A stretch of 62,550 nt of DNA, the filler included, from Dimorphilus gyrociliatus (taxonomy: Eukaryota; Animalia; Annelida): assembly GCA_904063045.1 (NCBI GenBank). It is 3 parts of 3 records of this genome, joined end to end, with 100 filler letters (N's around TTAATTAATTAA, not from the genome) between each part and the next. Parts side by side here need not be neighbours in the genome. Positions count along the whole stretch, not along the records: positions 22,826 to 48,030 come from CAJFCJ010000162.1; 2 more parts are not named here. One strand, written 5' to 3'. Under the pieces are notes generated by a model that saw only the letters and a program-made list of their open reading frames with translations, was not told the DNA's origin and did no database searches. Shown here piece by piece: positions 8,709-42,398 of the stretch (positions are counted from its first letter, which is position 1; each line of letters opens with the position of its first letter). Both the position numbers and the translations under genes were made by a program.

Positions 8709-9012
8709 AATCAGATATACTTGCTCCTTATATACTGATGCTAAATTTACTAACTCAATCAATTGAATATCATTATTAAAGTTGAATATAAAAACAGTGA
8801 AATATACAATCTACACATTTTCTTGATTGTTAGACTTGTTCTATTAAAATTGTTACATCTTATGCAATTCTCCAACCTTTGAAATTCAACTATTATTTAG
8901 AAGAGGAAAACAATAAAAACATGACCATATTTAGAACTTTTCTTTGTCTTAAAATGTTACTTTTATTTTTGTGAACATTGACATTTGTGAACTATCAACC
9001 CTTAAAGAGTAT
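8709..9012 (+). repeat. Dispersed ~300-bp repeat (LRR-gene-like remnant), copy 1
   Basis: Closely matches 43452-43750 (aatcagatatactt..ctgatgctaaatttactaactcaatcaattgaatatc..gaagaggaaaacaataaaaacatgacc). A partial relative lies at ~40570-40810. Confidence 0.8.
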
Positions 9013-9249
9013 TTAAGTGTTTTGTTGATTAATTTCTACTAAAATTACATTTGTTAGACTATTTACTTAAACTTAAAAGGTTCTATTTGGACAAGTACTT
9101 TGACAAATTGGTAAATGATTGGAAATGACGATTACAGTTATGACAAACAAGAAATTCCTACAATTACTATACAACAATGCACATTTCCCAACATTTACAA
9201 CTTTCTTCATATAATTCACAAAATAAATTAGAAATTTCTTTTTTAAGTG

Positions 9250-9470
9250 TGTTTGGACTTGAGAAGCTGATCAGAAATGTCTGGAAATGCACTTTTAATT
9301 TCTGAATCTCCATACAAATGTAATTCTTTTATTTTAGAGCAATTTTTCAACAACTCTGCTAAACATTTGCCTTTTTCCTCATCTAAATTACAATCTCCAA
9401 GATCTATTTTCTCTAGATTATTTTTAGAATAAACATATAACCATTGACTACTTTGGGATTTTTGTATTTC
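9250..9470 (-). pseudogene. LRR gene fragment
   Basis: Minus strand reads SKNNLEKIDLGDCNLDEEKGKCLAELLKNCSKIKELHLYG..QLLKSKHT then stop. Same RI-like LRR class as 6195-7664. Confidence 0.55.
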
Positions 9471-9883
9471 TGTTCAATACAAGGCAAAAAGTACTAATGA
9501 TAATAAATCATCTGGAAAAACAATTGCAGATGACATTATCTGTAAATATTAAACTGGAAATTCTACTTTACATTTTAATCTAATTTTCAGCTTGATTAGA
9601 TGGATTTCTTTCAAATTAATCCAAATAAACCTATGTATTTTTTTACAACTTATTTTATAGGAACAATACACTTTCAGTCAATAGTAACATGTATAAGTGA
9701 TTACATTTGAAGAGTAGAGAAATCCCCACCAACAAGGAGAGATTAGGATTTAATGTTTAGGGTTATTAACCTTCACTTGACCTAATTAATTCTATATGAC
9801 CTTATCATTTTCCATATTTGATTCAAATTCAAAGTTTCAGTTTATTTATTTTAATTTCAAGATAAAATTTCTGATAATCATCA

Positions 9884-11761
9884 TTATCCAGAAACACAAA
9901 ATAAAACAACAGATGTCATTTTATATTTGTCACTATAGACAGGATTTGCAGACACCACTGAAACAATATCTGCTTCTTCCAGTTGAAGTAGTCCTGTCCT
10001 ACTCATAGTGTGAAAGGCTGGAAATACATTTCTTACATTGAACATTCTCAATTTTATCTCATCATTTACAAACACTTCAACAAGTGATTGACTATAAGGA
10101 TGAATTCCAACTGAAATATCAATAAAGTATAGGCCAGCCACAGCAACATGGTATGTATTATCTGATGAACTCCAAGAGAGTGTACTATCCAAGGCAATGG
10201 TATCATAGGCAATTCTTATTTTAGACACAATCTGTTGAGTAGATGTTCTAAAAGCAAAGAATGCTGGATATTCATCAGTTACATTCAACTTGAATCCTGT
10301 CATATATAAACTTATGTATCTGTTCTCTATTTGACCACTTATAAATTTGTAACCAATTTTATCAAGGGCTTCCAACTCGACAAGAAATCCTCTAGTTACC
10401 TGACTTGAACCAGTGTCCACTCTGTGTCCTTTACCTAGACAATATTCAGGTATAACTGTGTCATTATTTATGACAAGACCAATTTCAACAGAGCTACGTA
10501 CATTACCTGCTCCCATGTTTATATAGTACCAACCCTTAGTTGACACAGATAAATAGAGTTGATTTTCACCATAGCTAACACCACGCAAAGAAACAGCATT
10601 ACTAAGGGATACAATACTTGGGCGAACTATTGCTGCATTGTTGTAAACAAAGAAGACATTGTTTGTTTCATAATGAAAAGCTAGCCAAGATGTCTCACTG
10701 CCTTCAGTTGACCCAATTACTGATACATTGACACCCAGTAATGTATGGATATCAGTTACAAGTCTATAGTTAAAAACTCCAGTTCAAGACAGTGTAAATG
10801 AACTTTCTTCATGATGCTTAAAAACTGCAAATGATTCCCTTGGCTTTGTTCTCAGTGTGATTAGTCTGGTCCCCATGCTGCCTGTTGCAGTCAGGGACAT
10901 AAAATAAAATCCAGGCTCCTTAATCTTTAATGAATTTGTTGAAATATTCAACATTTCATTATTGTTAAAATTAATTCTTTGCCATTTAAAATGTTCAGAA
11001 GCAGTCACTGACTCTCTAACAAATGATACCATAAAAGATGGATTTTTATATGATGTGCAAGGTGTACTGGAACATATGTCTATATCAACTGAATTGCCAG
11101 AGCAGTCAGCACCTCCATTTGCTGGTGGTGGATTTGTACAACTTCTTACATGAGTTCTAAGACCAGGACCACAGGCTGGTCTACAACTAGACCATGCTGA
11201 CCATTGAGACCACCCACCAGCTAATTCACATTTAGCTTCTTCATGTCCAACACACGTCCTTAAATTACAATCTCTAACATTTAATGATGGACTGACATAA
11301 TGTCCTGTTGGACACATTTGTGGCCAGGAGACGTTTTGGTGGCAGTGATAATATTGTCTGCAGTCATTAAAATTTGGATAGGTTCCATCTTCCTTACCTT
11401 CGCATTCTGAATTCTTCAAATAGCAGAGTTCATTGTTATTGCCATTTTTAGAGCATTCTTCAACAATTTTCTTATTTATGATAGGTAGTGAATTTTTCCC
11501 AGGACAATTAGCCAGTTCTGGTTGTACACAAGCTGTGTATTGGCAATTGTATGAATAGATGGTAAAAAGTAGTCCAGGAGGACATTGCTGCATATGAGAG
11601 GTTCCATTGATGCAATGATAGTAGATACTGCAGTAATTTGGATCTCCAAAGACACCATCAATGGGTTTTAGGTTTGAATTTATAGGACATTGAAATGCTG
11701 AATTAGTTGAAAATGCAGACAACAGAATTACTGTAAAAAACACATATAAGTGAATTTTCAT
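9884..11761 (-). pseudogene. Secreted chitin-binding (2x CBM14) - TSP1 - C1q-domain protein with one in-frame premature TGA
   Basis: Signal peptide, two peritrophin-A-like Cys motifs, TSP1 (WSQWSAWSSC..CGPG.RTHVRSC) and then C1q-like repeats. ORFs 10784-11761 and 9884-10588 are in frame, and the 65 codons between them are open. The only stop is TGA at 10784-10786. Confidence 0.8.
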
Positions 11762-12888
11762 ATTGTCTAATTGTCACCTGAATCCAATTTGAACGAAACA
11801 AGTCAACAAAATATTATTTTATAGGCTTGAATTGTCTATCACGTGACCTCTAATCATTAACTAAAGAAAAAGGGCAGTGTTGAACTAATAAAAGTTGTTT
11901 ATTTTTTGATCAGTGTGTCAAAAGTATTTGTTTTCCCTAGATAAAAGAATTCTTATATTTATTATCAGATTATAAATGTGTCAAAGGTTAAAAGTAAGTG
12001 TTTCATATATAATATAAAAAAATATCTTTATAATAACTCCAATGAACAATCTATCAGTTGGGGAAATTTAGGTGACAATTTCTCTTTGAAATTATTCATT
12101 CTAGTCATATTTAACTCCTTACATACTTAAAATCCTAAAAGTTCAGCAGGAATAAAAGTAGATATTTATCAACTGAAAGATTATAAATTGTACTTTCATC
12201 TAACCTCTCATAGACTTAATATGAGATTAATAATCTGATAATAAAGTTATTAAAGTCAAAATATAGAATACAATAGATTATGAATTGGGTTTATTCTCAA
12301 AATGAAACAATTGATACATTGATGCTAATTTCAAAGTATTATCAATGAGTCTTTTCTTCATTTGGGATAGTATAATCTAATACTTTCTCTTTAATGTCCT
12401 TTGACTAAGTAGTTTTTAAGAGAAAACCTTCAATTGTTGATATGTCCTAAGAGAATGTAGTCACCAATCATTCGATTTGTTCAGGTCTTATCCTTCTCCT
12501 TCAGCACAACATGTATCTGACAGTATGTAACAACTGATATTTTGATTAATGACTTACGAGTATGACAGACAGGAGCAGGTGAAACAGATGCAACAGAAAA
12601 CATCCACAAATCAGTGCTTTTACCCTAACCCTAATCCAGCCCTTAGCTGTACCTAACCTTTTCTATTACCCCTAACCTTCTTAAAATTTAAGAAGGCTGT
12701 GGAAAGCCGCCATTTTTAGATATGCAATGGATATGGATAGGAAAATACTGACACACTGAAATTACCCAACTGCATATTTGCCAATTGTATGAATTTATTT
12801 ATTTATATTTGTTTATTATGAGGAATTAAAGCGTAGCTGAGTGAAACAATTACTTCGATAGGAATAACTAAGGGTCAGCTCGAATTAT

Positions 12889-13028
12889 GGAGAAAACGTC
12901 CACTGGAGAAAACGTCCACTGGAGAAAACGTCCACTGATTGGAGAAAACGTCCACTGGAGAAAACGTCCACTGATTGGAGAAAACGTCCACTGGTTGGAG
13001 AAAACGTCCACTGGAGAAAATGTCCACT
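12889..13028 (+). repeat. Left TIR subrepeat array (8 x GGAGAAAACGTCCACT)
   Basis: Read directly; 4-nt spacers follow some units and the last unit has CG>TG. Confidence 0.95.
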
Positions 13029-13438
13029 ATGTGAAGAATATATTAAAAAATACTTTTTCAAATTTAAATTTTTATTATTGATTTTGAGATATATCCAATA
13101 CATTCCCATAATGCAATCACTTTTGGTAGCCATTTTGAAATCCAGACAGGAAACAGTTCTGGGATCTTCTATGTTTTTCATGGAAAGTGAATATTGTGCA
13201 TATTTCATCTACAATTTTTCAGAATTTTTTGCAGTTTGAAATATATTTCACTATTGAAAACCATCAGACAAAACACAAACTTTAGAATTGATATCAGTAA
13301 GTTATAGAATATTGTGTTGAAATGATTTATTTATAAATTAGCTTTATTTTTATAGCAGCCATTTTGTTTATCATTATTGTTAATTGTTTAATTTTTAAAT
13401 TTATACAGTTGGTTATTGATAGAGATTCCAAATTGAAC

Positions 13439-15389
13439 ATGGCACCAATTTGTTACATTTGTGAAGAGAGAATATATGGAAGACAAAATCAAGAGAAATG
13501 TCAGCTTTGCTGTCATTTATTTAAAATACATAAAAAATGTTTGGATTATAAAGGTTTGTTTAAGTTTTTTGTCACTATCCTTCCTTACAAATATGTTTTT
13601 ATATTTTTTCACAGATCAATCATTTTATTGTAACATTTGCTGTGACATATCAATGAAGAAATGCATTGTTGCACTTCAAAGGCTACCTTCTAGTGCATCT
13701 GCTAATGAAGAAATAAGACAAACACCAAATTTTGATACAGCAAATAATAGAAATGAGCAAACTATTGTTTGTGAAAATCATTGTGGAAATTCAAGTGGAA
13801 ATGATACAAATGCCAGTATTATGGAATCACACAATGTTTTAGTTGAAGATCTTCCAGCTCAGCAAAATAATATGATGGAAGTTTCATTTATAGTTTCTCC
13901 AAAATCAGATTGTGAGAAAGAAAGTTATTCATTTAAAATCTTAAAGGGAATGAGCCAGAAAGGAAAAGATTTGTTACTTTTCAACAATTTCTGCTACAAT
14001 ATTAAAGAAAAAAGAAACAAGACAACATTCTGGATATGCAGTGTTAGGAACAAAAGAAACAAATGTTCAGCAACAGTTAGTCAGCATGGGAACAGTTTTT
14101 ATCCTGGAAAGTTATCCCATTCTCATGAAAGAGTACCTGATTTGGAACAAAAAATAATGATTAGGAATGAACTAAAAAATGCTTGTAATAAAGATATCAG
14201 TAGTTCAAGAAAACGTTTAGCTGAAGATGTTCTGGTGAAACATTGTAGTTCTGGTGAAGTTATTCCATCTCTAGATAATTGTACAAGACTGGCAAACTGG
14301 ACAAGAAAGAAGTTTAGACCAGCTGAACCTCAAAGTATTCACTTCAACTTGGCTAAAACTTTTATTCCTGATGATTTTTTACAAATGGATATACAAATGG
14401 AGAATGATAGAATACTAATATTTTCAACTACAAAGCAAATTGAATTATTATCTAAAGGCAAAATATGGTTTATGGATGGCACATTTAAATGTGTGAAAGA
14501 CCCTTTTTATCAACTTTTTTCTATTCATGGATTTATAAAAAAAAATGGAGAAATAAAACAAATTCCAATGGCTTTTGCTTTTATGGGATCTAAGAGAAAG
14601 ACAGCCTACAAGAAATTATTTAAGGTACAATAATTTTGCATTTTAAATTGAATAATCTAATTTGTTAAATTAACAGGCAATACAAGATTTAACAAATGGG
14701 CATAGCCCCAAAAAAGTTGTTGTAGACTTTGAAAAAGCTATTTGGAAAGCACTATCATTCACTTATCCTGAAGCAAACATTAAAGGGTGTGTTTTTCACT
14801 GGACACAGGCAATATACAGAAAGATTCAAGTAATACTTTAATTTAATATTTGAGGTCTAGATAGAACTGACATATTTATTTCCAGGAATTAGGATTATGT
14901 AAGATGTACAAGGAGAAAAAAGCTGAATATAGAATCATGAAGAAATTAATGGCATTACCATTCCTGCCCTCTGATCTGATAGAACCAACATTTAAGACTA
15001 TTAAAGAAATAAGTCCTATTGAAATGAAGTCTCTATTGGAGTACATTGAGACACAATGGATAAATGGATTTTATAAACCAGAGGTATGGTCTGTTTATGG
15101 TGAGGCTATAAGGACAAATAATGATCTTGAAGGATGGCATCACAGGCTTAACAAGAATCTTTGCTCTAACACTGCATTCTATTTGCTTTTAGATGAACTG
15201 AAAAGAGAAGCTGATCTGATAAAGCTATATAAAAAATTACTGAGTGAAAAGAAAATTTGTAGACAGCAAAGAAAAGCATATCAGAATATTCAGAGCAAAA
15301 TATTCAGCTTATGGGAACAATTTGAAATTGCCTCAATTACCTCCCTGGACTTACTTGATAAAGCTTCTGACATTTATTCACCAGTTTAA
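13439..15389 (+). CDS. MULE transposase with N-terminal PHD-like finger and FLYWCH domain; 4 exons (13439-13553, 13615-14624, 14677-14829, 14886-15389)
   Basis: GT-AG introns of 61, 52 and 56 nt keep the frame open. PHD-like C..C/C..C/H..C/C..C spans intron 1. FLYWCH motif (LLLFNNFCY..FWICS..C..HSH) and MULE motifs WFMDGTF, VVVDFEKAI, GCVFHWTQA and RTNNDLEGWH are present. Confidence 0.88.
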
Positions 15390-22825: not shown

Positions 22826-23451
22826 CCTAACCCTAACCCTAACCTAACCCTAACCTAACCCTAACCCTAACCCTAACCCTAACCCTAACCTAACCTAACC
22901 CTAACCTAACCCTAACCTAACCTAACCTAACCCTAACCTAACCCTAACCTAACCTAACCTAACCCTAACCCTAACCCTAACCCTAACCCTAACCCTAACC
23001 CTAACCTAACCCTAACCTAACCCTAACCCTAACCTAACCCTAACCCTAACCTAACCCTAACCCTAACCTAACCCTAACCTAACCTAACCCTAACCTAACC
23101 CTACCCTAACCCTAACCCTAACCCTAACCCTAACCCTAACCCTAACCCTAACCCTAACCTAACCCTAACCTAACCCTAACCCTAACCTAACCTAACCCTA
23201 ACCCTAACCCTAACCTAACCTAACCCTAACCCTAACCCTAACCTAACCCTAACCCTAACCCTAAACCTAACCCTAACCTAACCCTAACCCTAACCCTAAC
23301 CCTAACCTAACCTAACCCTAACCCTAACCCTAACCCCTAACCCTAACCTAACCCTAACCCTAACCCTAACCTAACCCTAACCTAACCCTAACCCTAACCT
23401 AACCCTAACCCTAACCTAACCCTAACCTAACCCTAACCCTAACCCTAACCC
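22826..23451 (+). repeat. Telomeric repeat array (CCCTAA mixed with CCTAA), left chromosome-end orientation
   Basis: About 625 bp of pure C-strand repeats at the start of the contig. Confidence 0.95.
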
Positions 23452-23787
23452 TTTAAAGTTTAAAATAAAAAGTTGATGAAAAAGAAAAAATTTAATTGTT
23501 ATTGAATAAGACTAAGAGTTTGACAGAGCACTGAAGCACCAAGGAGCTCAGACATAGAGAACTCCTACCTATTGGAAAATTGGTAGAACCCTGGAACACC
23601 AACTAACCAGTTCCCAAAACCTGACTAAGACTGGGAGCCCAGATCTATAATCCTGACCAAGGAGAACCCCTACCTAACATTGAGTAAAAGTTAGGTATTA
23701 CACTGGAACACTAGCTAACCAGTTCCCAAAAACATTACCAGAGTTGTGTGAGTGGCCTAACCCATAACCCTTACCAAACCCTAACCT
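23452..23787 (+). repeat. 5' pLTR (5'-truncated) ending in telomere-like tail
   Basis: Apparently identical to 28655-28987 and 29060-29390. Ends CCTAACCCATAACCCTTACCAAACCCTAACC and contains two internal CTGGAAC..CCAGTTCCC repeats. Confidence 0.9.
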
Positions 23788-23807
23788 ACCCAGTACAGAC
23801 TTTGGCA

Positions 23808-24590
23808 ATGGACCCTAAACAAAACCAAGCTCCTAGAAGAACAAAAAAAACAGGAAGAAAGACACCCTACTCCAGAGCTCCAGACAAACCCAGATGGGTA
23901 CAAGTCACAAAGAGCCAGACTGCACCTGATGCAAATGGTTTTAAAGGTTCTCTAAGTGACAAGGAAAAAGCCCTGACTAGAGCTATGAGTAAAACTTACA
24001 GTTCTATTCACCAGATTGAGAGACTTAAGGAATATAACCCTTGGACCAAAAAGGCCATGGATATGATGGACTCAATTAGAATCACAGGAGGTCCCATTAC
24101 TGGGGAAAGACTCAACCAACTACATGAAATAGCCAATACTTGTGCTAGAGAAACAAATAGAGTGGTGCTGGAGGAGCTCAATGAGAGGCTCTCTAAAATG
24201 AGGGACAAGATAAAAAATGATCAGCAAAATTACAATCAATCAGAGGTTAAGAAAGCTATTGAAGTAGCTAAAACCAGATCGATACAAAAATATGGCAAAA
24301 AGATTAATTGGGCCCAACTTAAAGAAAGTGTATACTTGGTTACCAAAAATCTAAAAGCTCCCTTAGATGACTCTTTCAATAGAGAGCTCCATGAAAATTT
24401 CAAAGAGCTCCCTACCATACAGAGATCCAAGAAACCAGCAGACAAAACCAGACACAAAGAACCTTACAAGAACTCTAAGGATGAAATCTCAGAACTAAGA
24501 AAGGAATTGGCAATCATGACTGTCTTATTTAAAGGAATTACAGAGAAAATGAGTGCTGATGAGGAGACTATGGACCAGGGAAACTCCTAA
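23808..24590 (+). CDS. PLE ORF1, basic and coiled-coil protein (260 aa)
   Basis: First ATG at 23808. Basic N-terminus with heptad-like segments (EELNERLSKMRDKIKND, DEISELRKELAIM). Also present in the second copy. Confidence 0.8.
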   Translation: MDPKQNQAPRRTKKTGRKTPYSRAPDKPRWVQVTKSQTAPDANGFKGSLSDKEKALTRAMSKTYSSIHQIERLKEYNPWTKKAMDMMDSIRITGGPITGERLNQLHEIANTCARETNRVVLEELNERLSKMRDKIKNDQQNYNQSEVKKAIEVAKTRSIQKYGKKINWAQLKESVYLVTKNLKAPLDDSFNRELHENFKELPTIQRSKKPADKTRHKEPYKNSKDEISELRKELAIMTVLFKGITEKMSADEETMDQGNS

Positions 24591-24661
24591 CTCTTCAAGC
24601 ACAACAGCATAACAATTATAATGTTTTTAAACATGTTTTTATCAATAAAACAGAACCAAGT

Positions 24662-26938
24662 ATGGTTTTTAACCTATGTAGGAACTCTAACATCAAGAGT
24701 TCTTGCCTGAACACTATGGCACAAGGTCTGGGCTTTGCCTGGACTTGGGCCCCAAATAAATTTATAAACTTGCACTTCACAGGGATCTTGGATTATACAT
24801 TAAAATGGCTAAAGATCATTGAGAAAAATGGTACACCAAGATTTCGAAATAATCCACTAAAGAAAAAACTTCTTGACATACAAGCACCATCTCTACCTGA
24901 ACTAATGAGGAAGTTAAATTACATGCCCTCTAGTCATATTCCAGAAATTAACCATATCACAGACAGGATATATGACATTATAAAGGGCTCTGAAAAAATT
25001 AATAGAGCCCAGAAGGGTTTTGAAAATCAAGGCCTAATGAAAAACTTCCTCAACAATCATCCTAACATTATCATTAAACCAGCTGATAAAGGAAGAAGGA
25101 TTGTCTTAATGGACAAAGAGGACTATGTCTTTGAAGCCATGACACAGCTCTGTGACAGAACAACCTACAAACAGGTCAGCAATAAAATAAGCTCTACCCA
25201 ATGGACCCGGTTAAATGAAATCCTTAATGAATTGGTTACAATGAAAATTATTACCAAATCTACAGCAACTCTGATGGCTCCACAGAATAGCCCAGGAGAT
25301 AGAAAGTTTTACCTCCTACCTAAAATTCATAAACACAGCTCCCAATGGAGAGTACCATATAGGATCCCCAAGGGGAGACCAGTGGTGAGCTATGTAGGCT
25401 CTGATCTATATAAAATATCTAAATTTGTTGATCACTATCTGGTCAAAATGGCAAAAAGTACCACTAGCTATGTTAAAAACACCCAACATTGCATTGGCAA
25501 ACTATCTATGATACATAATTGGCAAAACAGAGGGATCTTCACAGCAGATGTAGAAGCTCTATACCCAAGCATTAACCCTCAATGGGGCATAAAAGCTGTT
25601 AAAGAGTTCATGTTAACCCACTACCATGAAGGTAGACCTGATGAACTAATCTTGGAACTCCTTTGGATTTGTCTCAACAACAATGATTTCACCTTTGGGA
25701 ACCACAGGTTCCTGCAAATAAAGGGCACAGCTATGGGAGCTCCATTTAGTCCTGCATATGCAAACATAGTGTTACACACCTGGGAACATGAATTGGTCAC
25801 AGATTTTACAGAGGACATTGAGTACTATGGCAGGTACATTGATGATATCATTTTGGTCACTAAACCAGACAGGGACATCATGGAGTTCAAGACAAGACTA
25901 AACAACAGAAATCCAGATATCAAGCTCACTTGGTCCCAGAACCCTAAATCAAGTACTTTTCTGGACTTGGACCTACATATACTAGGGAACTCTCTTTCCT
26001 GGGAAACCCATTTTAAGGCTACTGACTCCAGAATACTGCTACACACCAAATCCAATCATCCACCACACACATTCAGAGGTATCCTAATGAGCCAGCTAAC
26101 TAGATATATGAGAAACTGCAAAGATCCCAAAATGGCTATCTCACAGTTCAAAGATCTCATTAGAATCAATAAAGTCAATGGCTACACCTGGAGAATGGGG
26201 AGGGACACCATTAAAAAATTCAACACCAGAGCTGAAGAAAAAAAGGCACTGAGGTATAAAGTCAATAAATGTTGTAACACTAGATGTGATACTTGCCTCA
26301 GACTGGACTCCAGAGATGAGGTATTTGACCTATACCAGGTCAACTCTTGGAGCTTAACCCAAAGCATTAACTGTAACACCAAGGGTTGTGTCTATATCCT
26401 ACAATGCTCTATGTGTGGGTTAGCATATGTGGGTATGACTACAGATACTATCAAGTGTAGATGGGGTACCCATAATTTGGGCTTCAAAAACAAGATAGAT
26501 AGACCACTATATAACCATATGGCAACACATGATATCAAGAAGTTCAAGATCTACATAGCTGCTGTAGCTCCTAAGGAACTCACAGAGAGCTCAGTAATAG
26601 TTTGGTTAATGAGAAAAGAAACTGAAATCATCAACCATTTGGATACACTGTTCCCACATGGTCTTAATAAACATGAAGGTTTTACCACCAAGGAAATGGT
26701 ACCACTCCTCATACCACAACACAATGGAGCCCAACTAATAGCTGAGAAAGTCAAGAGAACAATCCACCAGCTAGCCCCTAACAGCTCTCACTTCCAAATG
26801 TATAAGTCAATAACTGCCTTTAGGATTCCAACTACTACCAGACACTGGCTTATCAATAAGAAGGTTGATGAGATGATGGAAAAACACATAGAAAAAATTC
26901 TACTCCAGAAAAGCCAAAGTGAACTCCAAGAACTGTAA
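24662..26938 (+). CDS. PLE reverse transcriptase + Cys-rich linker + GIY-YIG endonuclease (758 aa, intact)
   Basis: RT motifs IIKPADKG, FYLLPKIHK, GRPVVS, TADVEALYPSI, GTAMGAPFSPAYANI, RYIDD and FLDL. Linker CCNTRCDTC. Endonuclease motifs CVYILQCSMC..YVGMT..R..H, KETEII and HGLN. Confidence 0.95.
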   Translation: MVFNLCRNSNIKSSCLNTMAQGLGFAWTWAPNKFINLHFTGILDYTLKWLKIIEKNGTPRFRNNPLKKKLLDIQAPSLPELMRKLNYMPSSHIPEINHITDRIYDIIKGSEKINRAQKGFENQGLMKNFLNNHPNIIIKPADKGRRIVLMDKEDYVFEAMTQLCDRTTYKQVSNKISSTQWTRLNEILNELVTMKIITKSTATLMAPQNSPGDRKFYLLPKIHKHSSQWRVPYRIPKGRPVVSYVGSDLYKISKFVDHYLVKMAKSTTSYVKNTQHCIGKLSMIHNWQNRGIFTADVEALYPSINPQWGIKAVKEFMLTHYHEGRPDELILELLWICLNNNDFTFGNHRFLQIKGTAMGAPFSPAYANIVLHTWEHELVTDFTEDIEYYGRYIDDIILVTKPDRDIMEFKTRLNNRNPDIKLTWSQNPKSSTFLDLDLHILGNSLSWETHFKATDSRILLHTKSNHPPHTFRGILMSQLTRYMRNCKDPKMAISQFKDLIRINKVNGYTWRMGRDTIKKFNTRAEEKKALRYKVNKCCNTRCDTCLRLDSRDEVFDLYQVNSWSLTQSINCNTKGCVYILQCSMCGLAYVGMTTDTIKCRWGTHNLGFKNKIDRPLYNHMATHDIKKFKIYIAAVAPKELTESSVIVWLMRKETEIINHLDTLFPHGLNKHEGFTTKEMVPLLIPQHNGAQLIAEKVKRTIHQLAPNSSHFQMYKSITAFRIPTTTRHWLINKKVDEMMEKHIEKILLQKSQSELQEL

Positions 26939-26939
26939 T

Positions 26940-27180
26940 GAATTTCAGCAGCTACAACAAGCTCTACAAGCTACAATGAACTCCAAAAGCTACAGTTAGC
27001 TACAATAAGGTCCAAGAGCTCCAAGGAGCTACAGTAGCTCAGTTGAGCTCCAATACCACAGGAGACCTTGAAGAGCTCAGTAGAGCTCCAAGAACTCAGT
27101 AGAGCTCCAAGAGCTCTAAGAGCTCAGTAGAGCTCCAAGAACTCAATAGAGCTCCAAGAGCTCAAGTGAGCTTCAACAGT
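26940..27180 (+). repeat. GAGCTC-rich tandem repeat spacer between ORF2 and ORF3
   Basis: About 10 GAGCTC palindromes in short imperfect units such as AGAACTCAGTAGAGCTCCA. Also present in the second copy at ~44560-44790. Confidence 0.8.
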
Positions 27181-27295
27181 TCCCACAACTTAGTACTCAA
27201 CACCTCTGACAGTACTCAACTATACCACTATATATACTGGTGCAGAACCTCAGTCATCCTCTTCACTTGACAGTGTTAACAAGTACTTCCTAAAG

Positions 27296-28501
27296 ATGCC
27301 AGCTTCTAGATGTATGACAAATAAGTGCAAACTTTGCCCAGCCCTAATACAGGGAGGGTCCTGGAGCTCCAGAGATGGCCGTATTACTAAAAAGATTGAG
27401 GGAGACCTCAATTGTAATTCAGACCACTTGTTCTTCATTGCTGATTGCAAAAAGTGCAACTGGGCTATGGCTAGTTTCACCATATCTCCACTACATAGAA
27501 TGTATGGATTTTCATTAAAAAAATCAAAAACAAGCAAAGACAATGTTGGAGCTCTGGCTCTTCATATGAGGACCTGCAACACTACCAACATAAGAATCCT
27601 TCCTATCATGGTCCAACCAGAGACAGAACACTTCCATGTCAAGAAAGTGAGTACATTGTTGCAATTACTATATAATGCTGACTGGGTAGAAATAGCTAAG
27701 TTTAAGAAAAGTAACCCAGACATTAGAGGGACAAGCCCGAATGAGTTCCCTTGTGGTATCAGACCAACAATAGTTAGTATCCAAGGGGTTACCCTGGAGC
27801 TCTTGGAGAATTTTAATACACCCCTGCCTAAGGAGTTAGCTCATGAGCAATATGAGAACTCAGTTCTCTGTAACAATAAATACTCTTATGTGGGTCTGAG
27901 TAGACCCACATTGAATAACCTACGAAAAGATAATTTTGACCTTAGAAACAAAGTGGTAGAGCTAGAAAGTACAATTAAAGCAAACTCCAGTAAGCTGGAG
28001 GAAGCTAGTAATAAATTACAGGAAGCTAATAATAAATTAGAGGAAGCTAATAAGAGAAACAGAGAGCTCCTACTGGAACTAGAGAAAACTGAACAAAGAA
28101 CTCCAAATAGCAATGAATGGGACTGGTCAAAAGCTCTTCCTATTAAGGGAAGGGGCTTCATCAAGTTCTTCCCACTTCCAGAACAAGATACTGTGGAAAA
28201 ATTCAAAATAGAGCCAGTGACAATTAACCTTGAGGATCTTGACTCCAACTCTACACCAGGAACTCAACAAACTATAGACAGAGGAGCTCAACAAACTCCA
28301 GACAAAGAAATGGTCCCTACCAAGGAACAGACTGAGGAAGAAGAAGATGATGACAACTATGATGATATGGAAGATGGTGAGTATCAATATGAAAGTACTC
28401 CAAAAGAGAATAGCAATATTGGAATACAACAAAGACTCCTAATCAAAAGATCAGGTGATGAATTTGAAGTAGTACCTTCAAAGAAACAAAGAAAAATGTA
28501 G
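27296..28501 (+). CDS. PLE ORF3: degenerate Zn-linker/GIY-YIG-like domain, coiled coil, acidic tract, basic C-terminus (401 aa)
   Basis: N-terminus aligns by eye with the ORF2 endonuclease (RCMTNKCKLC ~ KCCNTRCDTC; LNCNSDHLFFIADCKKC ~ INCNTKGCVYILQCSMC; LALHM ~ LYNHM). Heptads KLEEASNKLQEANNKLEEAN, then EEEEDDDNYDDMED and PSKKQRKM. Confidence 0.8.
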   Translation: MPASRCMTNKCKLCPALIQGGSWSSRDGRITKKIEGDLNCNSDHLFFIADCKKCNWAMASFTISPLHRMYGFSLKKSKTSKDNVGALALHMRTCNTTNIRILPIMVQPETEHFHVKKVSTLLQLLYNADWVEIAKFKKSNPDIRGTSPNEFPCGIRPTIVSIQGVTLELLENFNTPLPKELAHEQYENSVLCNNKYSYVGLSRPTLNNLRKDNFDLRNKVVELESTIKANSSKLEEASNKLQEANNKLEEANKRNRELLLELEKTEQRTPNSNEWDWSKALPIKGRGFIKFFPLPEQDTVEKFKIEPVTINLEDLDSNSTPGTQQTIDRGAQQTPDKEMVPTKEQTEEEEDDDNYDDMEDGEYQYESTPKENSNIGIQQRLLIKRSGDEFEVVPSKKQRKM

Positions 28502-28604
28502 TTAGGTGGCGCTAGTGCAAGGGCAGCCATCTTGTTTTCATGTTTTATATATAAATTTTTTTTGTGGTGATGGTATAAATACTTATGTTTGTGTTCAGTT
28601 TAAC

Positions 28605-28649
28605 TTACAACCTGATGAAGCCTCAAGTAGAGGCGAAATATTGTTGTAA
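28605..28649 (+). ncRNA. Minimal type I hammerhead ribozyme in the 3' pLTR
   Basis: Stem I TTACAAC/GTTGTAA, core CTGATGA(A), stem II GCCTC-AAGTA-GAGGC, GAAA, palindromic AATATT in place of stem III. Predicted cleavage after 28642. Confidence 0.85.
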
Positions 28650-29000
28650 TATGTTTTAAAGTTTAAAATAAAAAGTTGATGAAAAAGAAAAAATTTAATT
28701 GTTATTGAATAAGACTAAGAGTTTGACAGAGCACTGAAGCACCAAGGAGCTCAGACATAGAGAACTCCTACCTATTGGAAAATTGGTAGAACCCTGGAAC
28801 ACCAACTAACCAGTTCCCAAAACCTGACTAAGACTGGGAGCCCAGATCTATAATCCTGACCAAGGAGAACCCCTACCTAACATTGAGTAAAAGTTAGGTA
28901 TTACACTGGAACACTAGCTAACCAGTTCCCAAAAACATTACCAGAGTTGTGTGAGTGGCCTAACCCATAACCCTTACCAAACCCTAACCCTAACCCTAAC

Positions 29001-29390
29001 CAGTTTAACTTACAACCTGATGAAGCCTCAAGTAGAGGCGAAATATTGTTGTAATATGTTTTAAAGTTTAAAATAAAAAGTTGATGAAAAAGAAAAAATT
29101 TAATTGTTATTGAATAAGACTAAGAGTTTGACAGAGCACTGAAGCACCAAGGAGCTCAGACATAGAGAACTCCTACCTATTGGAAAATTGGTAGAACCCT
29201 GGAACACCAACTAACCAGTTCCCAAAACCTGACTAAGACTGGGAGCCCAGATCTATAATCCTGACCAAGGAGAACCCCTACCTAACATTGAGTAAAAGTT
29301 AGGTATTACACTGGAACACTAGCTAACCAGTTCCCAAAAACATTACCAGAGTTGTGTGAGTGGCCTAACCCATAACCCTTACCAAACCCT
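29001..29390 (+). mobile_element. Additional pLTR unit of the same PLE, flanked by short telomeric tracts
   Basis: Copy of 28596-28980, preceded by about 3 CCCTAA units (28981-29000) and followed by CCTAA/CCCTAA to 29410. Confidence 0.9.
29010..29054 (+). ncRNA. Minimal hammerhead ribozyme, second copy
   Basis: Same sequence as 28605-28649. Confidence 0.85.
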
Positions 29391-29410
29391 AACCTAACCC
29401 TAACCCTAAC

Positions 29411-29657
29411 ACCTCACCCAAAGGGGATAGGTCCATTTCATATTATATACTTGCTCCTAACCCTTGAAAGAATACCCCACCTACTAAAGACACTAAAACC
29501 AAAATCATAAGTTAGACAAAAGGAAAAACTGGAACTCACCTTCCCCCAACAAGACAGGTCAACCAGTTCCTACAAAATACAATCATCAAAATCTGATCCA
29601 GGAGTGTTTTGTGAGTGGCCCCAATCCTAACCAAACCTAAACCCTAAACCCTAACCC
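29411..29657 (+). mobile_element. 5'-truncated pLTR of a related PLE family with telomere-like 3' tail
   Basis: Different sequence, but shares CTGGAAC..CCAGTTCC and GTGAGTGGCC with the main pLTR. Ends AATCCTAACCAAACCTAAACCCTAAACCCTAACCC. Confidence 0.65.
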
Positions 29658-33884: not shown

Positions 33885-34596
33885 NNNNNNNNNNNNNNNN
33901 NNNNNNNNNNNNNNNNNNNNNNNNNNNNNNNNNNNNNNNNNNNNNNNNNNNNNNNNNNNNNNNNNNNNNNNNNNNNNNNNNNNNNNNNNNNNNNNNNNNN
34001 NNNNNNNNNNNNNNNNNNNNNNNNNNNNNNNNNNNNNNNNNNNNNNNNNNNNNNNNNNNNNNNNNNNNNNNNNNNNNNNNNNNNNNNNNNNNNNNNNNNN
34101 NNNNNNNNNNNNNNNNNNNNNNNNNNNNNNNNNNNNNNNNNNNNNNNNNNNNNNNNNNNNNNNNNNNNNNNNNNNNNNNNNNNNNNNNNNNNNNNNNNNN
34201 NNNNNNNNNNNNNNNNNNNNNNNNNNNNNNNNNNNNNNNNNNNNNNNNNNNNNNNNNNNNNNNNNNNNNNNNNNNNNNNNNNNNNNNNNNNNNNNNNNNN
34301 NNNNNNNNNNNNNNNNNNNNNNNNNNNNNNNNNNNNNNNNNNNNNNNNNNNNNNNNNNNNNNNNNNNNNNNNNNNNNNNNNNNNNNNNNNNNNNNNNNNN
34401 NNNNNNNNNNNNNNNNNNNNNNNNNNNNNNNNNNNNNNNNNNNNNNNNNNNNNNNNNNNNNNNNNNNNNNNNNNNNNNNNNNNNNNNNNNNNNNNNNNNN
34501 NNNNNNNNNNNNNNNNNNNNNNNNNNNNNNNNNNNNNNNNNNNNNNNNNNNNNNNNNNNNNNNNNNNNNNNNNNNNNNNNNNNNNNNNNNNNNNNN
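33885..34596. other. Scaffold gap (712 N)
   Basis: N run without the TTAATTAATTAA linker. Confidence 0.95.
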
Positions 34597-35034
34597 TTCT
34601 TTATTTGTGAGCTTTATGAAATATTCGTCAGGGTTAAACTAACTCTGTTATTAATAATCATAAAGCTTTCAAAGTTGGTATAGATTAATATTAGTGGGCC
34701 TATTATAAATCTTTTTACAGAATCCAAATATCTCTTTTAGCTCAAAAGTTATGGCAACTTTATATTTTAATTGATACTTTGTATATAGACCTACAAAAAA
34801 CATTTGTCGTCTGAAATCTAACTTTGTTATTACTTAACTTAGAGCTTTGAAACTTGGTATATTGACTATTTTTGGTTTGCCAATCTCAATCTGCTTACAG
34901 AATCCAAATATCAGTTACTATTAGAAGTTAAGGTGTTTTACATTTTGCTATTATAAGGAATTAGAAACAATTCCAACAGAGTGTTTATGTAGAAAATTTT
35001 CTACTACCAGAATGGAAAGTCATTTAAAATAGCC
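34597..35034. repeat. ~440-bp inverted repeat arm (partner at 41954-42398)
   Basis: Near reverse complement of 41954-42398. Internal subrepeats contain GAGCTTTGAAACTTGGTATA and TTACAGAATCCAAATATC. Confidence 0.85.
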
Positions 35035-36825: not shown

Positions 36826-37200
36826 AATATTACTAAAAAGATTGAGGGAAACCTCAATTGTAATTCAGACCACATGTTTTTCATTGCTGATTGTAAAAAG
36901 TGTAATTGGGCTATGGCTAGCTTCACCATATCTCCACTACTACATAGAATGTCTGGCTCTTTTGCAAATACCAACACTCTGAATCTATTAGAATGTTGGC
37001 CATCCCCATGGTGGCATATTAAAACAGTCTTCAATAAACCACAAAACAAATTCTCTATTGTGAATAACATAGAGAGCCTGAACAACAGCAATGACACAAT
37101 TCTCACCATGGCCAATAGCTGGGTGGGGGATGATCAGGATAGTAGTTTTGCAGGTATTAATCTCCTATTGGAGATACAGAGAGAAATTGACAGTGAATGA
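36826..37200 (+). mobile_element. Relic of PLE ORF3 from a diverged copy
   Basis: KKIEGNLNCNSDHMFFIADCKKCNWAMASFTISP closely matches ORF3 (27380-27500); the sequence diverges afterwards. Confidence 0.8.
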
Positions 37201-38619
37201 AAATTAATAGGGCTAGTTATTGGCTGAGTAGGGATTGAACACCTCTTTAATGGGGAACAGGTTGTGGTAGTTGGCAGTGAACAAACAGTTCCCCAACAAA
37301 AACACCACATCTGGTTCCTATATCCTAACCCTAAGCTATAGCCCCCTAAAAAGATACAAATTAGTGAAACTTTACAACTAACCCTAACCTAAGATAATGG
37401 AACCAACACTTAACTTAGCAGAGAAGAAGGTACAGACTGGACAGACATGGGACCTGTTCAGAACAAATTGTTAAATAAAAAATGGGGTAATTTGTGGGGA
37501 GACACCTCTCTATGAGAGAACAGATGGTTGACAGTTGGCAGTGAACAAAAGTTCCCCAGCAACATGGGTCTACAGACCTTATGCTACATAGTACCCAAAG
37601 GATATATATATATCAATGAGTTAGTTTTGATCCAAAAAAATCAGTGCTGTGGCAAAAATTCCCAATTCTGGGCCGTTTAGGAGTTTCGTTATGCGTCATC
37701 CTAGACGTTTCAATTTTGTTGGAGGTGATAGAGCTCAAAAAGAGCTTTTCACTGATATGCTACACGACCATGTAGCTTTTACAGTTCAGGAGTGGCTGAG
37801 CTTCGAAAATCAAAAATTTTCCGAGTCCAGGCAGAAAAATAAAAATATTTTTTTCTATCTTTCTGACGTAGGGGCAAGCTTGGATTCAAGTTTGAAAGCA
37901 ATCCGATGATTTTGAAAAATTGGCCTTCACTGAGGCTCTGGACTTGTAAAGATTTCTCGAAAATCATTAATTTTCTAAGTTCTTTGTCAGGTTAATTACC
38001 TGTAAAAACGTTACATTCGCCTGGGTACTTAGAAAGATTTTGGAAAAAATATTTTCCGAAAATATTCTAAGTCCAGCCTAACACAGTGTTAGGTTTTGGA
38101 CTTAGAAAAATTTTGACTGAAAAAAGTCGATAAATTTTTCAAAAATATTCTAAGTCCAAACTGGAGGTGAAATCACCCCTTATCTTAGATTCAGTTATAT
38201 TTCATGGTGCGGTAATGAATAGGGCTCTGGACTGCCCCATGCAAATAGGATTGGCCATATATGTACAGAGGAAGGAACATAGAATTGAATCTAGGTCTTC
38301 TTCTGTTACATTTTATGAAAAGTGACTTACCTGATTGTTATACCTGCGATTTTTGAAAGGTTACCCTCTAATTACTATAGAACGTAGGGTCGAGATACTG
38401 GTAATAGAGTCTAAGGCTGCCAGTCAGCCATCCTCACCTACCACCGTTAACTTCAAAGCTCCATAGCTCTGCAACAGCTGGGCCGATTTCGTTCAAATTT
38501 TGCACAGTTGCTCAGTTCAATTAGATCTAGCACTGTGTAAAATTTCATAACAATCGGAGCAAGTTGAAATTTCAACTTTCGTCAGTGGTCGACTTGCTTT
38601 ACTGACCACCAAGTAGGTG

Positions 38620-39007
38620 ATTTGTAGCGAAAAAAGTGTGGGATTGAACCAGTACCTACCCTAAGGTATAGTAAGCCTCTCAGAGATCAGTCTGGTGGCA
38701 ATCTAACCAGCCACTTTTCCCCTCTCACTTGATAAAGGAGGAATACCTCCGAAATATTGTGAGTTTTAATCTGGTGACATTGTTTTAGTTGCTAAATACA
38801 GGTTCTCTTCACCCTTGTGGAGAATTTGTAAGTGGTTTTGTTGGAGATACAGTTACAGCTTAGGCTGGGGAATTGCTACTCAAGATAGCAACTCCTCAAT
38901 AGCTACACCAACCCTTAGCCAAAGCTTGGTTATAAGTGTGTGTGCACTTTTGGGATTACCAGTCTGTACTGATTGTGCTAATCCCTAACCCCAAAACCTA
39001 AACCCTA
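38620..39007 (+). mobile_element. pLTR-like relic of a third PLE family with degenerate hammerhead and telomere-like tail; 5' boundary approximate
   Basis: Hammerhead-like fold at 38724-38763; ends CCCTAACCCCAAAACCTAAACCCTAA at ~38984-39007. Confidence 0.55.
38724..38763 (+). ncRNA. Degenerate minimal hammerhead (core mutated)
   Basis: Stem I CTCAC/GTGAG, core TTGATAAA in place of CTGATGAA, stem II GGAGG-AATA-CCTCC, and the same GAAATATT. Confidence 0.6.
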
Positions 39008-41953
39008 ATCAACAATTCTCCTATTCTTTGCTCCAAAGAAATAATATGTGTAAAAGTTAGTTCTTAGATACACTTTACATTTGACTGCCCTTGTTTCAAT
39101 TTCATGTAACTTCAATTCATAGATGTCAGCTGTTATTGTTTTTGTTTGCTGGGCTTCTATGCTACAAACAGGTTCCTCTGCTAGATCAAATGCCTGAGTA
39201 GTGTACAACTTTCGTTCTATTTTATTCTTATACTATTATCTATAACTTACTTAAAACCTATGCAAGGAAATACAATAACATGTGGCCTAACACAGACATT
39301 GGTTTGTCATACTTGAGGTTCATCCTTAAGTACCAATTAAGCTTTGGCCAAGTTATAATTCAATTAGCTTGCCTAGGGTGTGGCCAAGATACCATTTAAT
39401 TAGTTTAGCCAAGGTGTGGTCAAGTAATAATTCAATTAGCCTTCCTAAATGTTGAACCTTGTAACATCCTCTTACTAAAGATAAATGTAAACTAGACAGT
39501 TTGACAGTCATGAAGTGGTGATTGGACACTAGAGAATAGTCTTCAAGTATATAACTCCTCACTGCTTTACTCCAATTGGCTAACCTCAACCTGGGAGGAT
39601 CAACTGGAACCATCACCCACTGGGATCTTTCTACTTCCTCAACATTGGACACTAGTTTGGTAATTTGGCAATCTACTGTTACCCACTACTTACTCTGCTA
39701 TTGAACTTTCTTATTGTTACTTGCTTAAGTATTATTTTCAATAAACCACTTTAATTTAAACACTTTGTTTAAAGGTTCGAGTAGAACCAGTACTGTTATA
39801 AGTTGCAAATGCATAAATTGGCAAGACCAAAGCAGTACAATATTCACTTCTCCTAATAATGTATCACAGGCAGACCTAGATTCAGTTCTATGTTCCTTCC
39901 CATGTACATATATGGCAGCCCAGAGCCCTGTTCATTACTGCACCATGAAATTCAACTGGATTGATAGTAAGGGGTGATTAAACCTCCAGTTTGGACTTGG
40001 AATATTTTTGAAAAATTGATATTTAACACAGCTACACATACTTTTTTGTTTCTAAGTCCAGCACCTAACACTGTTTGAACACATTTAGGCAGTTCATAGG
40101 TACTGAATACATAAGCTTATAACCAGGCTCACGAATTCATAAACACAATACACCGAAATTGTTACATTTCATTCATTGATGGAAAGCAATATTGAAAGAG
40201 TATTATATAGTACTCTACACGCCTAAAACTACAACATACACTATTTAAACTTAGTTGTAAAAGTATTTTCCAAGTTAGATGTTAACCCTAATTATTATAC
40301 ACATCATATTTAATGAATATTAATTATATCTTCCACTATTCTATTTATATTTGGAGTTTTTAGATTATTGTCACTTTTGAACAGTATTGTATGCACAATA
40401 CTATATTAGATGATTAAGTTTAATACTTTTATCCTACCAGTTCTTTACACAGAAACATATTATCTTACACAAACAATTATTATTAATAATTTGTTATATA
40501 TTAAAATGGCATCAAGTTGACCTTTTCCTATTTTTGTGTTTTGGAATCAATCCAACTTCTATTAATAATTGTTACATCTTAGGCAACTTTCTGACCTACT
40601 AAAATAGGGAGCAAAAGTTCTCCAAGATAAAGAAAAAGTAACAAACATGGAAGTATATTTGAATCTTTCCCTTTATCCAAATTGTTACATTTGTTTGTGT
40701 GAATATTTGTGATCTGTGAACTGTCAACTATTGAAAAAGTATATAAACCCTACGAATTCAACAGTAGGTAGTTCAGTTCTCTAACCATTAACTGGTTGTT
40801 TAAACTTGCTTGTTTATTTAAATAAGGTTATGATCATATTTTTATTTCTTATTATTTCTTCTAAAAAGTTTTTTCCTTAAAGTTTAATCTTACATTACAA
40901 CTCAGTGAAAATTTTTCATTATAGAGCTGTAAAGTTTTTTTTACCTAAAACAAAAGTTAGCTAATACAATATTAATGTATTGAATAGGTTTTATATGTTA
41001 CTTTCCTCTTTCTCAAATATATATATATAATTGATTTCATTAAACATTGGAGAGATATATAAAGAATACTTTTATCAATTTAACCACAGCAAACCAAATG
41101 CTACAATTCAAGATTCCTTTTAAAAGTATATAAAAATATTCAAAAGAATGATTTCCATCAGAACCAATAGAAAAAGTTTTGGGAAGAAGAGGTGTATAAG
41201 AAAAGGATTGAGACAATAAGAAAAATAAACATGGTAAACAAGAAAACAAGAAAAAGGAACAGGAGAAACAGAAGGAAAACAAGAAGAGAAACAAACTCAC
41301 CAAAAGGATGAGCAAGCAGAAAAGGCAGAGATGAAGAAAGTGTTATTTATTTTAAAGAAATAGATATTAAAAAAAATGATAAAAATATATATTAACCAAG
41401 AAATTTGATTCAAACATTTGGTAAAATATTATTAAACTGAGAAGAATTGATCACTCTTACAAATAACTTTTGTTTTTGGCTAAAATTCATAAAAAAATAT
41501 TAATTATAGTAAAGAATGAAAAGTAATTATTATAAATTTAATACCAACAGCAAGACAGAATTGTAAAGTTATATTATATTATATATTTACTTTAAATTTC
41601 AATTTTGCCTTAAACTTTAATATATTTTCTTTATACAATTCATCACATTTCTATTAATATTTTTGGAATAAGAAATATTTATGTATTATGCAGAACATCC
41701 CTCTAATTGTTATTATTTTTTCCTGACAATAATTTTAGTTCAAATTTGATCAAAATCGGCCCAGTAGTTGCTGATATTAATCATACTGGCCTTAAAAAAT
41801 ATTCGTCATCTGAAAACTAACTTTCTTATTAGTTAGCTTAGAGCTTTGAAACTTGGTATATAGACTAATTTTGGTATGCCGATCTCAAATCTGCTTACAG
41901 AATCCAAATATCAGTTACCGTTTTTGAGCTATTTACAATTAAAGTGTTTTACA

Positions 41954-42398
41954 GGCTATTTTAAATGTACTTTCCATTCTGGTAGGTAGAAAATTTTTCT
42001 ACATAAACACTCTGTTGGAATTGTTTCTAATTTCCTTATAATAGCAAACTGTAAAACACCTTAACTTCTAATAGTAACTGATATTTGGATTCTGTAAGCA
42101 GATTTGAGATTGGCAAACCAAAAATAGTCAATATACCAAGTTTCAAAGCTCTAAGTTAAGTAATAACAAAGTTAGATTTCAGATGACAAATGTTTTTTGT
42201 AGGTCTATATACAAAGTATCAATTAAAATATAAAGTTGCCATAACTTTTGAGCTAAAAGAGATATTTGGATTCTGTAAAAGGATTTATAATAGGCCCACT
42301 AATATTAATCTATGTACCAACTTTGAAAGCTTTATGATTATTAATAAGAGAGTTAGTTTAACCCTGACGAATATTTCATAAAGCTCACAAATAAAGAA
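41954..42398. repeat. Inverted repeat arm, part of a foldback-like repeat extending ~41790-42560
   Basis: Reverse complement of 34597-35034. The subunit at ~41805-41915 is locally inverted relative to ~42070-42190. Confidence 0.8.

Follow-up and report, generated by a model that had tools for sequence, protein, structure and literature searches.

Here, we report an endonuclease-bearing (EN+) Penelope-like element (PLE) of the annelid Dimorphilus gyrociliatus that forms telomere-capped stacks of copies, appears recently active, and probably integrates by telomere-repeat-primed reverse transcription. It was studied in a 62,550-nucleotide (nt) stretch of assembly GCA_904063045.1 (hereafter, the window), in the piece taken from CAJFCJ010000162.1 (positions 22826-48030), where three pieces of one family (family A) and one of another (family B) make up a stack at 22826-29657. 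In the most complete PLE survey, reverse-complement telomeric repeats and a terminal location characterize the endonuclease-lacking (EN−) Athena and Coprina elements, and EN+ elements are described as intrachromosomal with one open reading frame (ORF) each; a 2026 paper repeats the division into EN−/telomeric and EN+/non-telomeric. The literature searched thus reserves telomere-complementary tails for EN− PLEs, as an earlier note on this DNA had held. Searches for endonuclease-bearing telomeric PLEs found none, with Repbase reports and two key papers outside their scope, and the D. gyrociliatus genome paper mentions neither Penelope elements nor telomeres.

The piece starts with a 627-bp telomeric array, the orientation of which fits a left chromosome end (Table 1). 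Directly capped by it (boundary, 23452/23453) is a partial unit that carries the element's last ~335 bp, has its start 12 nt 3' of the site where hammerhead cleavage is predicted, and passes via a fixed junction into a complete unit. The earlier note had the element's 5' end fused to the telomere; the direct junction is there, but it is this 5'-truncated partial unit, and not a true 5' end, that touches the array. Farther inward, the truncated family-A copy at 29001-29410 is older than the full unit, and the family-B piece, whose tail (29610-29657) meets unique DNA at 29657/29658, is the oldest. In all pieces of the stack, sense strand and telomeric C strand coincide on the plus strand, and every pseudo-long terminal repeat (pLTR) ends in a CCCTAA-like tail, both as the note had read them. 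At the non-tandem junctions in the window, a degenerate encoded tail is followed by 10 to 16 nt of perfect telomeric repeat (~16 nt in the tail at 29364-29410) and then by the next piece. The junction between pLTR tail and ORF1 recurs between tandem copies at two other loci of the genome, L004 and L088.

Table 1. Features of the D. gyrociliatus element and its copies in the window
Feature	Position (nt)	Strand	Details
Terminal telomeric array, C-rich strand	22826-23452	+	CCCTAA mixed with CCTAA units
5'-truncated partial unit (upstream pLTR)	23453-23787	+	Matches unit 28655-28989, 99.7% identity
Encoded telomere-like tail at pLTR/ORF1 junction	23756-23791	+	Six degenerate C-strand repeats
Complete family-A unit	23788-29000	+	5,213 bp
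ORF1	23808-24590	+	260 aa, basic N-terminus; open
ORF2	24662-26938	+	758 aa; open; DKG, RT, linker, GIY-YIG/CCHH
Reverse transcriptase (RT) domain	25328-25912	+	Pfam RVT_1, E 1.4e-10, aa 223-417
CX4CxxC linker	26270-26296	+	C537-x4-C542-x2-C545
GIY-YIG/CCHH endonuclease	26381-26638	+	PF01541, E 3.3e-6, aa 574-659
ORF3	27296-28501	+	401 aa; open
Type-I hammerhead	28605-28649	+	Helix I 7 bp, CUGAUGA, helix II 5 bp, GAAA, minimal palindromic helix III
Full-unit tail	28959-29000	+	~10 nt perfect telomeric repeat replaces expected tandem-junction continuation
5'-truncated family-A copy	29001-29410	+	From unit 28596, hammerhead included
5'-truncated family-B 3' end	29411-29657	+	247 bp; 98.8% identity to L004 339-584
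Chimeric 5'-truncated internal copy	36828-39008	+	129 bp of family-A ORF3 fused to family-C 3' half
Second family-A copy, deletion variant	43846-48030	−	5' end runs off piece; tail/unique DNA at 43846/43845

The unit has the features of the PLE class (an RT with DKG and YxDD motifs, tandem-derived pLTRs, and a pLTR hammerhead), that of EN+ PLEs (GIY-YIG/CCHH fused to the RT), and the Neptune-type linker. ADKG (aa 141-144) and YIDD (aa 392-395) of ORF2 are invariant or nearly so among 612 homologues, and the same holds for Y578, C582, C585, Y589, G591, R600, H604, H619, E653, and N669 of the endonuclease in relatives of 31 to 44% identity. The linker cysteines are kept in the closest relatives and missing from fish Poseidon-type matches. 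The endonuclease is fused to the RT, keeps all of its catalytic residues, and is thus working-looking. The note's reading of an intact RT and a complete GIY-YIG domain in an intact three-ORF EN+ PLE is borne out by these matches, by three open ORFs, by the hammerhead, and by a three-ORF relative in another organism (L002). An exact look-up of ORF2 in public assemblies gave no match; the D. gyrociliatus copies were reached via neighboring gene models.

Family DNA copies occur at 97 to 99.7% identity in the assembly. One array, L088, begins at the end of contig CAJFCJ010000041.1 and holds at least 3.3 head-to-tail copies with their 5' ends outward; inward of these, the tail leads into 116 bp of telomeric repeat, after which a 5'-truncated copy of 57 bp and a further 32 bp of repeat precede unique DNA. 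At L004 (CAJFCJ010000107.1), a family-A copy is followed by 35 bp of repeat, 5'-truncated family B, 98 bp of repeat, and unique DNA, and at least three tandem copies face the family-A block across a scaffold gap. This gap (6555-6607) joins two blocks head to head, the mirror of the arrangement in the window. A short-read contig from another sample (X2) has perfect CCCTAA repeats joined to unit position 28582, a truncation point that differs from the window's 28655; it places a second telomere-element junction in short-read data. The truncation points seen are 28582, 28596, 28655, and ~28931, the truncated ends bear C-strand repeats, and at all eight non-tandem 3' junctions (8/8), the change from encoded tail to perfect telomeric repeat falls in the same few bases. 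Because L088, L004, and the X2 contig repeat the arrangement of the window, telomere-capped, 5'-truncated, one-orientation stacks are a recurrent feature of the family and not an accident of a single contig. The ORFs of intact copies show 11 synonymous against 3 non-synonymous codon differences, so the copies appear young, and family A is, by this codon comparison, likely to have been recently active under selection.

Relatives were collected by a metagenome scan with the ORF2 alignment (80 loci), which with four earlier loci gave 84. A tail was scored where at least three tandem CCCTAA-type units stood 3' of ORF2 or upstream of ORF1. By this measure, sense-strand tails are carried by 16 of the 84 EN+ relatives and antisense tails by none (0/84); shuffling would give 0.42 loci, and a composition-matched control motif gave 0. 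All of the 15 tail-bearing loci examined (of 16) have a full endonuclease with catalytic residues, and tail-bearing loci occur both with and without the linker. L002, a Logan contig of run SRR23372230, is the closest relative; it shares all three ORFs, its ORF2 has 43% identity, and it bears a telomere-like stretch directly upstream of ORF1. In an RT tree (a quick search of relatives only, with no named clade references), the window's element groups with L002, then with L005, and then with family C/L006, and the tail-bearing loci fall in at least five clusters. Other relatives terminate in (AC)n, (CT)n, (ATAC)n, or (TAT)n; a bias toward microsatellites is known for EN+ PLEs and has been ascribed to the linker. 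Sense-strand telomere-like tails are therefore not confined to the Dimorphilus lineage, and the note's suggestion of a lineage-specific trait falls accordingly. The 16:0 strand bias in environmental relatives suggests that the trait is common and has been overlooked. In one metagenomic relative (L007, 5120-5750), ~600 bp of degenerate CCCTAA with a conserved GC-rich motif every ~180 bp looks like a stack of very short 3'-end copies.

We propose that integration proceeds as follows. The unit would be transcribed as a tandem multimeric RNA that holds a degenerate CCCUAA stretch at the pLTR/ORF1 junction. A DNA 3'-OH ending in TTAGGG, provided by a natural or eroded chromosome end or by an endonuclease nick in telomeric or telomere-like duplex, would pair with this stretch, and the ORF2 RT would copy the RNA from there. 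The cDNA would mostly stop early, leaving a 5'-truncated copy that telomerase would re-cap, and repeated rounds would build polar stacks with 5' ends outward, tails inward, and short telomeric tracts between. The junctions fit pairing of a TTAGGG 3'-OH because the switch from tail to repeat is constant, the truncation points are many, and the truncated ends are capped by C-strand repeats. For tandem copies with invariant junctions, the best explanation is that multimeric RNA was copied or that recombination took place.

The tail at 23756-23791 is the proposed site of pairing and of the start of reverse transcription because its position is analogous to the AC-rich start site of PAc, a Poseidon element of Anolis carolinensis and the only PLE reconstituted in vitro. 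On its multimeric RNA template, PAc begins reverse transcription at an internal site, an AC-rich element close to the pLTR/ORF junction, which yields the PLE "tail." The Dimorphilus element resembles it in its pLTR hammerhead, in an AC-rich element at the matching position, and, by analogy, in a tandem multimeric RNA template. PAc differs in that it cuts AT-rich DNA and starts without target homology, whereas in Dimorphilus, the AC-rich element and the telomeric G strand are complementary, which would allow the element to pair with the primer.

Most likely, the primer arises in two ways, by addition to ends and by endonuclease nicking. A role for the endonuclease is favored because it is conserved, because sister families end in microsatellites, and because internal insertions exist; additions to eroded or broken ends are favored because the proximal tracts are very short and tails abut unique DNA. 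Endonuclease-independent terminal retrotransposition by itself, in which, as for Athena and Coprina, an uncapped end would offer its G overhang as primer at the tail and the endonuclease would be kept only for occasional internal insertions, is rather unlikely. It would account for the polarity and the repeat-capped, 5'-truncated copies, the proximal tracts of 10 to 116 bp resemble additions to eroded ends, and the innermost tails meet unique DNA directly, as in chromosome healing. However, every catalytic and zinc residue of the endonuclease is kept throughout the lineage and in each tail-bearing relative examined, the sister families with other microsatellite ends bear the known signature of endonuclease-targeted insertion, and internal insertions do occur. 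The polarity and the tails are, as the earlier note held, those of terminal PLEs, and the arrangement recurs at L004 and L088. The note's endonuclease-free G-overhang priming is not sustained: with a conserved endonuclease and with sister families whose ends are other microsatellites, endonuclease-guided insertion into telomeric repeats fits equally well.

A wholly endonuclease-dependent route is conceivable but doubtful. Here, as in TRAS/SART, insertion would be repeat specific: the linker-endonuclease would nick the G strand of duplex (TTAGGG)n, the nick would pair with the tail and start target-primed reverse transcription, and telomeres would simply be the largest supply of the microsatellite. 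Published work ties the linker to microsatellite targeting, the linker and the endonuclease are conserved, and the ends of relatives are (AC)n, (CT)n, (ATAC)n, or (TAT)n; truncated copies have repeats on both flanks, and an internal family-C copy (L003) has ~20 nt of telomere-like sequence on each side. Against such a route, some tail-bearing relatives have no linker, the proximal tracts are far shorter than the distal array, several tails meet unique DNA with no repeat past the encoded tail, and PAc, the sole PLE with in vitro data, cleaves AT-rich DNA and begins with no homology to its target.

Several observations weigh against integration primed by telomeric repeats. The chimeric copy at 36828-39008, which has a hammerhead (38724-38763) and a tail (38985-39008) and was seen in three runs, borders on unique DNA at either junction. 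An 86-kb contig holds L003, a full family-C copy, in its interior, and a 1.67-kb fragment (L001) lies 131 kb into a 305-kb contig. The second family-A copy in the window points the "wrong" way unless the scaffold join at 33885-34596 is arbitrary. Copies are known from the loci listed here and not as a genome-wide distribution, and the window's own junction of telomere and element, which the note would have had in reads, is seen in the assembly sequence alone. Tandem arrays could grow by unequal recombination instead of transposition, and contig ends tend to land in any high-copy repeat. Priming at the tail is something we infer from a structure that by itself fits both end addition and endonuclease-guided insertion. 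Because internal copies exist (36828-39008 and L003, with unique DNA at both junctions), the note's term "telomere specialist" is too strong.

Some of these points recur in a further explanation, by which the element is an ordinary dispersed EN+ PLE, its tail is an AC-rich RT start, and copies pile up near ends without targeting, through subtelomeric recombination, relaxed selection, or assembly artefacts. That contig ends fall in repeats, that tandem junctions are invariant, that scaffold gaps adjoin copies, and that assembly indel errors are many all speak for it. We regard it as improbable all the same: the stacks mix two families, with varied truncations and tract lengths in a single orientation, an independent short-read sample has another telomere junction, and the strand ratio among relatives is 16:0. 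Telomere-repeat-primed reverse transcription stays the preferred reading.

Two features of the assembly bear on how these copies are read. The scaffold gap at 33885-34596 (712 N) divides the piece into two contigs, and each outer end bears a copy with its 5' end outward; these may be two chromosome-end contigs joined tail to tail. Between the second copy and the unit, there are 59 gap openings but only 8 substitutions. The CCTAA units in the telomeric tracts (22826-23452; L004 261-358) and the many "frameshifts" are probably long-read homopolymer indel errors, because gaps far outnumber substitutions (59 versus 8) and the short-read contig has perfect CCCTAA. A mixed TTAGG/TTAGGG telomere as biology was rejected, assembly indels being the better explanation, and it is unsafe on the same evidence to read the second copy's frameshifts as decay.

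The internal chimera looks as if reverse transcription had switched from one element RNA to another. At 36828-36967, the family-A ORF3 fragment is in frame with the family-C ORF2 C-terminus, and the chimera's junctions occur as loose ends in three runs, one labeled as organism B.

The note had offered two accessory ORFs as novel. Only ORF3 is unusual, and it is the novel part of the element: it is a paralogue of the linker-endonuclease module, catalytically dead and joined to a coiled coil. Its first ~105 residues (4-109) align to the linker plus GIY-YIG profile (hhalign 98.5%, E 2e-15), and an ORF3 model matches the endonuclease domains of dozens of PLE ORF2s (best E 1e-13). This part keeps the Cys/His ligands but has neither the tyrosines of the GIY and YIG motifs nor the R, E, and N of the catalytic set. 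A coiled coil (aa ~203-267) and an acidic C-terminus follow. AlphaFold2 without an alignment gave a mean predicted local distance difference test score of 41, with the coiled coil as the only confident part, and a protein-atlas look-up of the N-terminal domain gave a weak lead toward GIY-YIG clusters. Families A and B have ORF3, as does L002 from another organism, at 27% identity (E 9e-18), and homologue searches found it in no others. Most likely, it is a DNA-binding accessory. An abundant deletion variant joins 27194 to 28299 and lacks 27195-28298 (1,104 bp, ORF3 residues 1-335). It makes up the L088 array (1-13538) and the window copy at 43846-48030, it also occurs in contigs of two runs, and ORF1 and ORF2 are intact in 2/4 of its copies at L088. 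ORF3 is therefore dispensable in cis, as the variant forms both this array and the window's second copy. ORF3 would be a rare case of a transposon that duplicated and disarmed its own nuclease, presumably keeping DNA binding alone. About nine copies of a 19-nt tandem repeat (27006-27175, plus strand) separate ORF2 from ORF3; the repeat is also present in the L004 copies, with differing copy numbers.

ORF1 is 100% identical to DgyrCDS14471, and it has homologues in the ORF1 of L002 (E 1e-19), L005, and L006. The family is tiny, with 15 members among 1.84 billion representative proteins. The ORF1 core resembles the N-terminal part of the 560- to 715-aa ORF1 of EN+ PLEs (hhalign 90.5%, E 1.3e-6), and a larger ORF1 stands upstream of the RT-EN ORF in 64/69 related loci, those with enough upstream sequence; the published PLE domain scheme foresees an optional upstream ORF1. 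By these alignments, ORF1 is a shortened, lineage version of the common PLE ORF1, with no novelty. A link between ORF1 and the telomere-like tail was considered and rejected, ORF1 being nearly universal in the set of relatives. Family C has ORF1 in L091 (9654-11388; P0130, 325 aa) and is without it in L003 (10141-10225), so the upstream ORF can be lost inside one family. A 194-nt coral metatranscriptome contig (X6) has ~93% identity to the ORF1/ORF2 boundary (window 24587-24780), which hints at a transcribed relative in a related worm within the coral samples or at DNA carry-over.

The hammerhead was located by eye and by regular expression and then backed by folding (−15.4 kcal/mol; z, −3.3) and by covariation of helices I and II across families A, B, and C, which all keep the core. 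Cleavage is predicted after 28642. An Rfam scan of the whole piece at E ≤ 1 returned no hammerhead; the architecture matches the published description of metazoan PLE hammerheads. The family-C hammerhead (window 38724-38763; L003 ~15075-15115) has UUGAUAA in place of CUGAUGA, with core positions 3 and 8, which are paired in the active ribozyme, changed jointly (U3/A8). Elsewhere in the piece, 34597-35034 and 41954-42398 form a ~440-bp inverted repeat (97.5% identity) with diverged copies in the flank, probably another small repeat family.

With Neptune and Nematis, the element shares a C-terminal GIY-YIG domain with CCHH, a CX2-5CxxC linker, DKG and YIDD motifs, the pLTR/tandem organization, the pLTR hammerhead, and the optional upstream ORF1. 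It differs from them in a tail that is a run of host telomere C-strand repeats, in its polar, telomere-capped terminal stacks, and in its third ORF, which arose when a linker-endonuclease module was duplicated and inactivated. The note's label "Neptune-like" suits the linker and motifs and is otherwise overstated, the apparent affinity being one of motifs alone.

Athena and Coprina (including Coprina-1_Alen) are alike in having the telomeric C strand as the sense strand, 3' reverse-complement telomeric repeats with a hammerhead upstream, telomere-capped 5'-truncated copies at ends, and an ORF1 before the RT ORF. They lack an endonuclease by definition, whereas that of the Dimorphilus element is fused, complete, and conserved, its RT groups with EN+ relatives, and its insertions can be internal. 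Terminons of bdelloid rotifers are telomeric, PLE-related elements that may carry a separate GIY-YIG ORF with linker and CCHH; ORF3 is likewise a stand-alone linker-GIY-YIG-like ORF, a likeness by description. Terminons, however, are giant (tens of kilobases) and multi-gene, with an Athena-type EN− RT, whereas the Dimorphilus unit has 5,213 bp, three ORFs, an RT-fused endonuclease, and an ORF3 domain that has lost the catalytic residues. TRAS1 and SART1 of Bombyx mori also encode an endonuclease and accumulate in telomeric repeats in a fixed orientation. This is a functional analogy, as they combine an unrelated non-LTR RT with an apurinic/apyrimidinic (AP)-type endonuclease, end in a poly(A) tail, and have neither a hammerhead nor a pLTR. 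The element has the defining features of neither Terminons nor TRAS/SART.

The element blurs the textbook EN+/EN− division of PLEs. PLE RTs are telomerase's closest relatives, and EN− telomeric PLEs are the main argument for a continuum between them; a conserved endonuclease together with a full telomeric lifestyle (a C-strand-like internal template, polar stacks, and re-capping by telomerase) in one element would be the missing intermediate. One protein makes it testable whether a TTAGGG 3' end is used by base pairing and whether the endonuclease is needed. An in vitro system exists for a Poseidon element, and follow-up is practical because D. gyrociliatus has a 74-Mb genome and is kept in laboratory culture. 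As a tentative proposal, which we put forward at somewhat less than even confidence, the rule that EN− PLEs are telomeric and EN+ PLEs are not may be wrong, telomere-complementary tails and telomere-repeat-primed reverse transcription may be widespread in EN+ PLEs, and pairing may be an old property common to PLE and telomerase RTs. Tails appear in about one-fifth of the sampled environmental relatives, spread over at least five clusters, whether or not the zinc-finger linker is present. On this proposal, Dimorphilus would show the outcome in a genome, telomerase-capped terminal stacks made by an endonuclease-encoding element with a nuclease-dead third gene. Pairing of a C-rich RNA template with a G-strand 3' end would then not be a specialization of Athena and Coprina.

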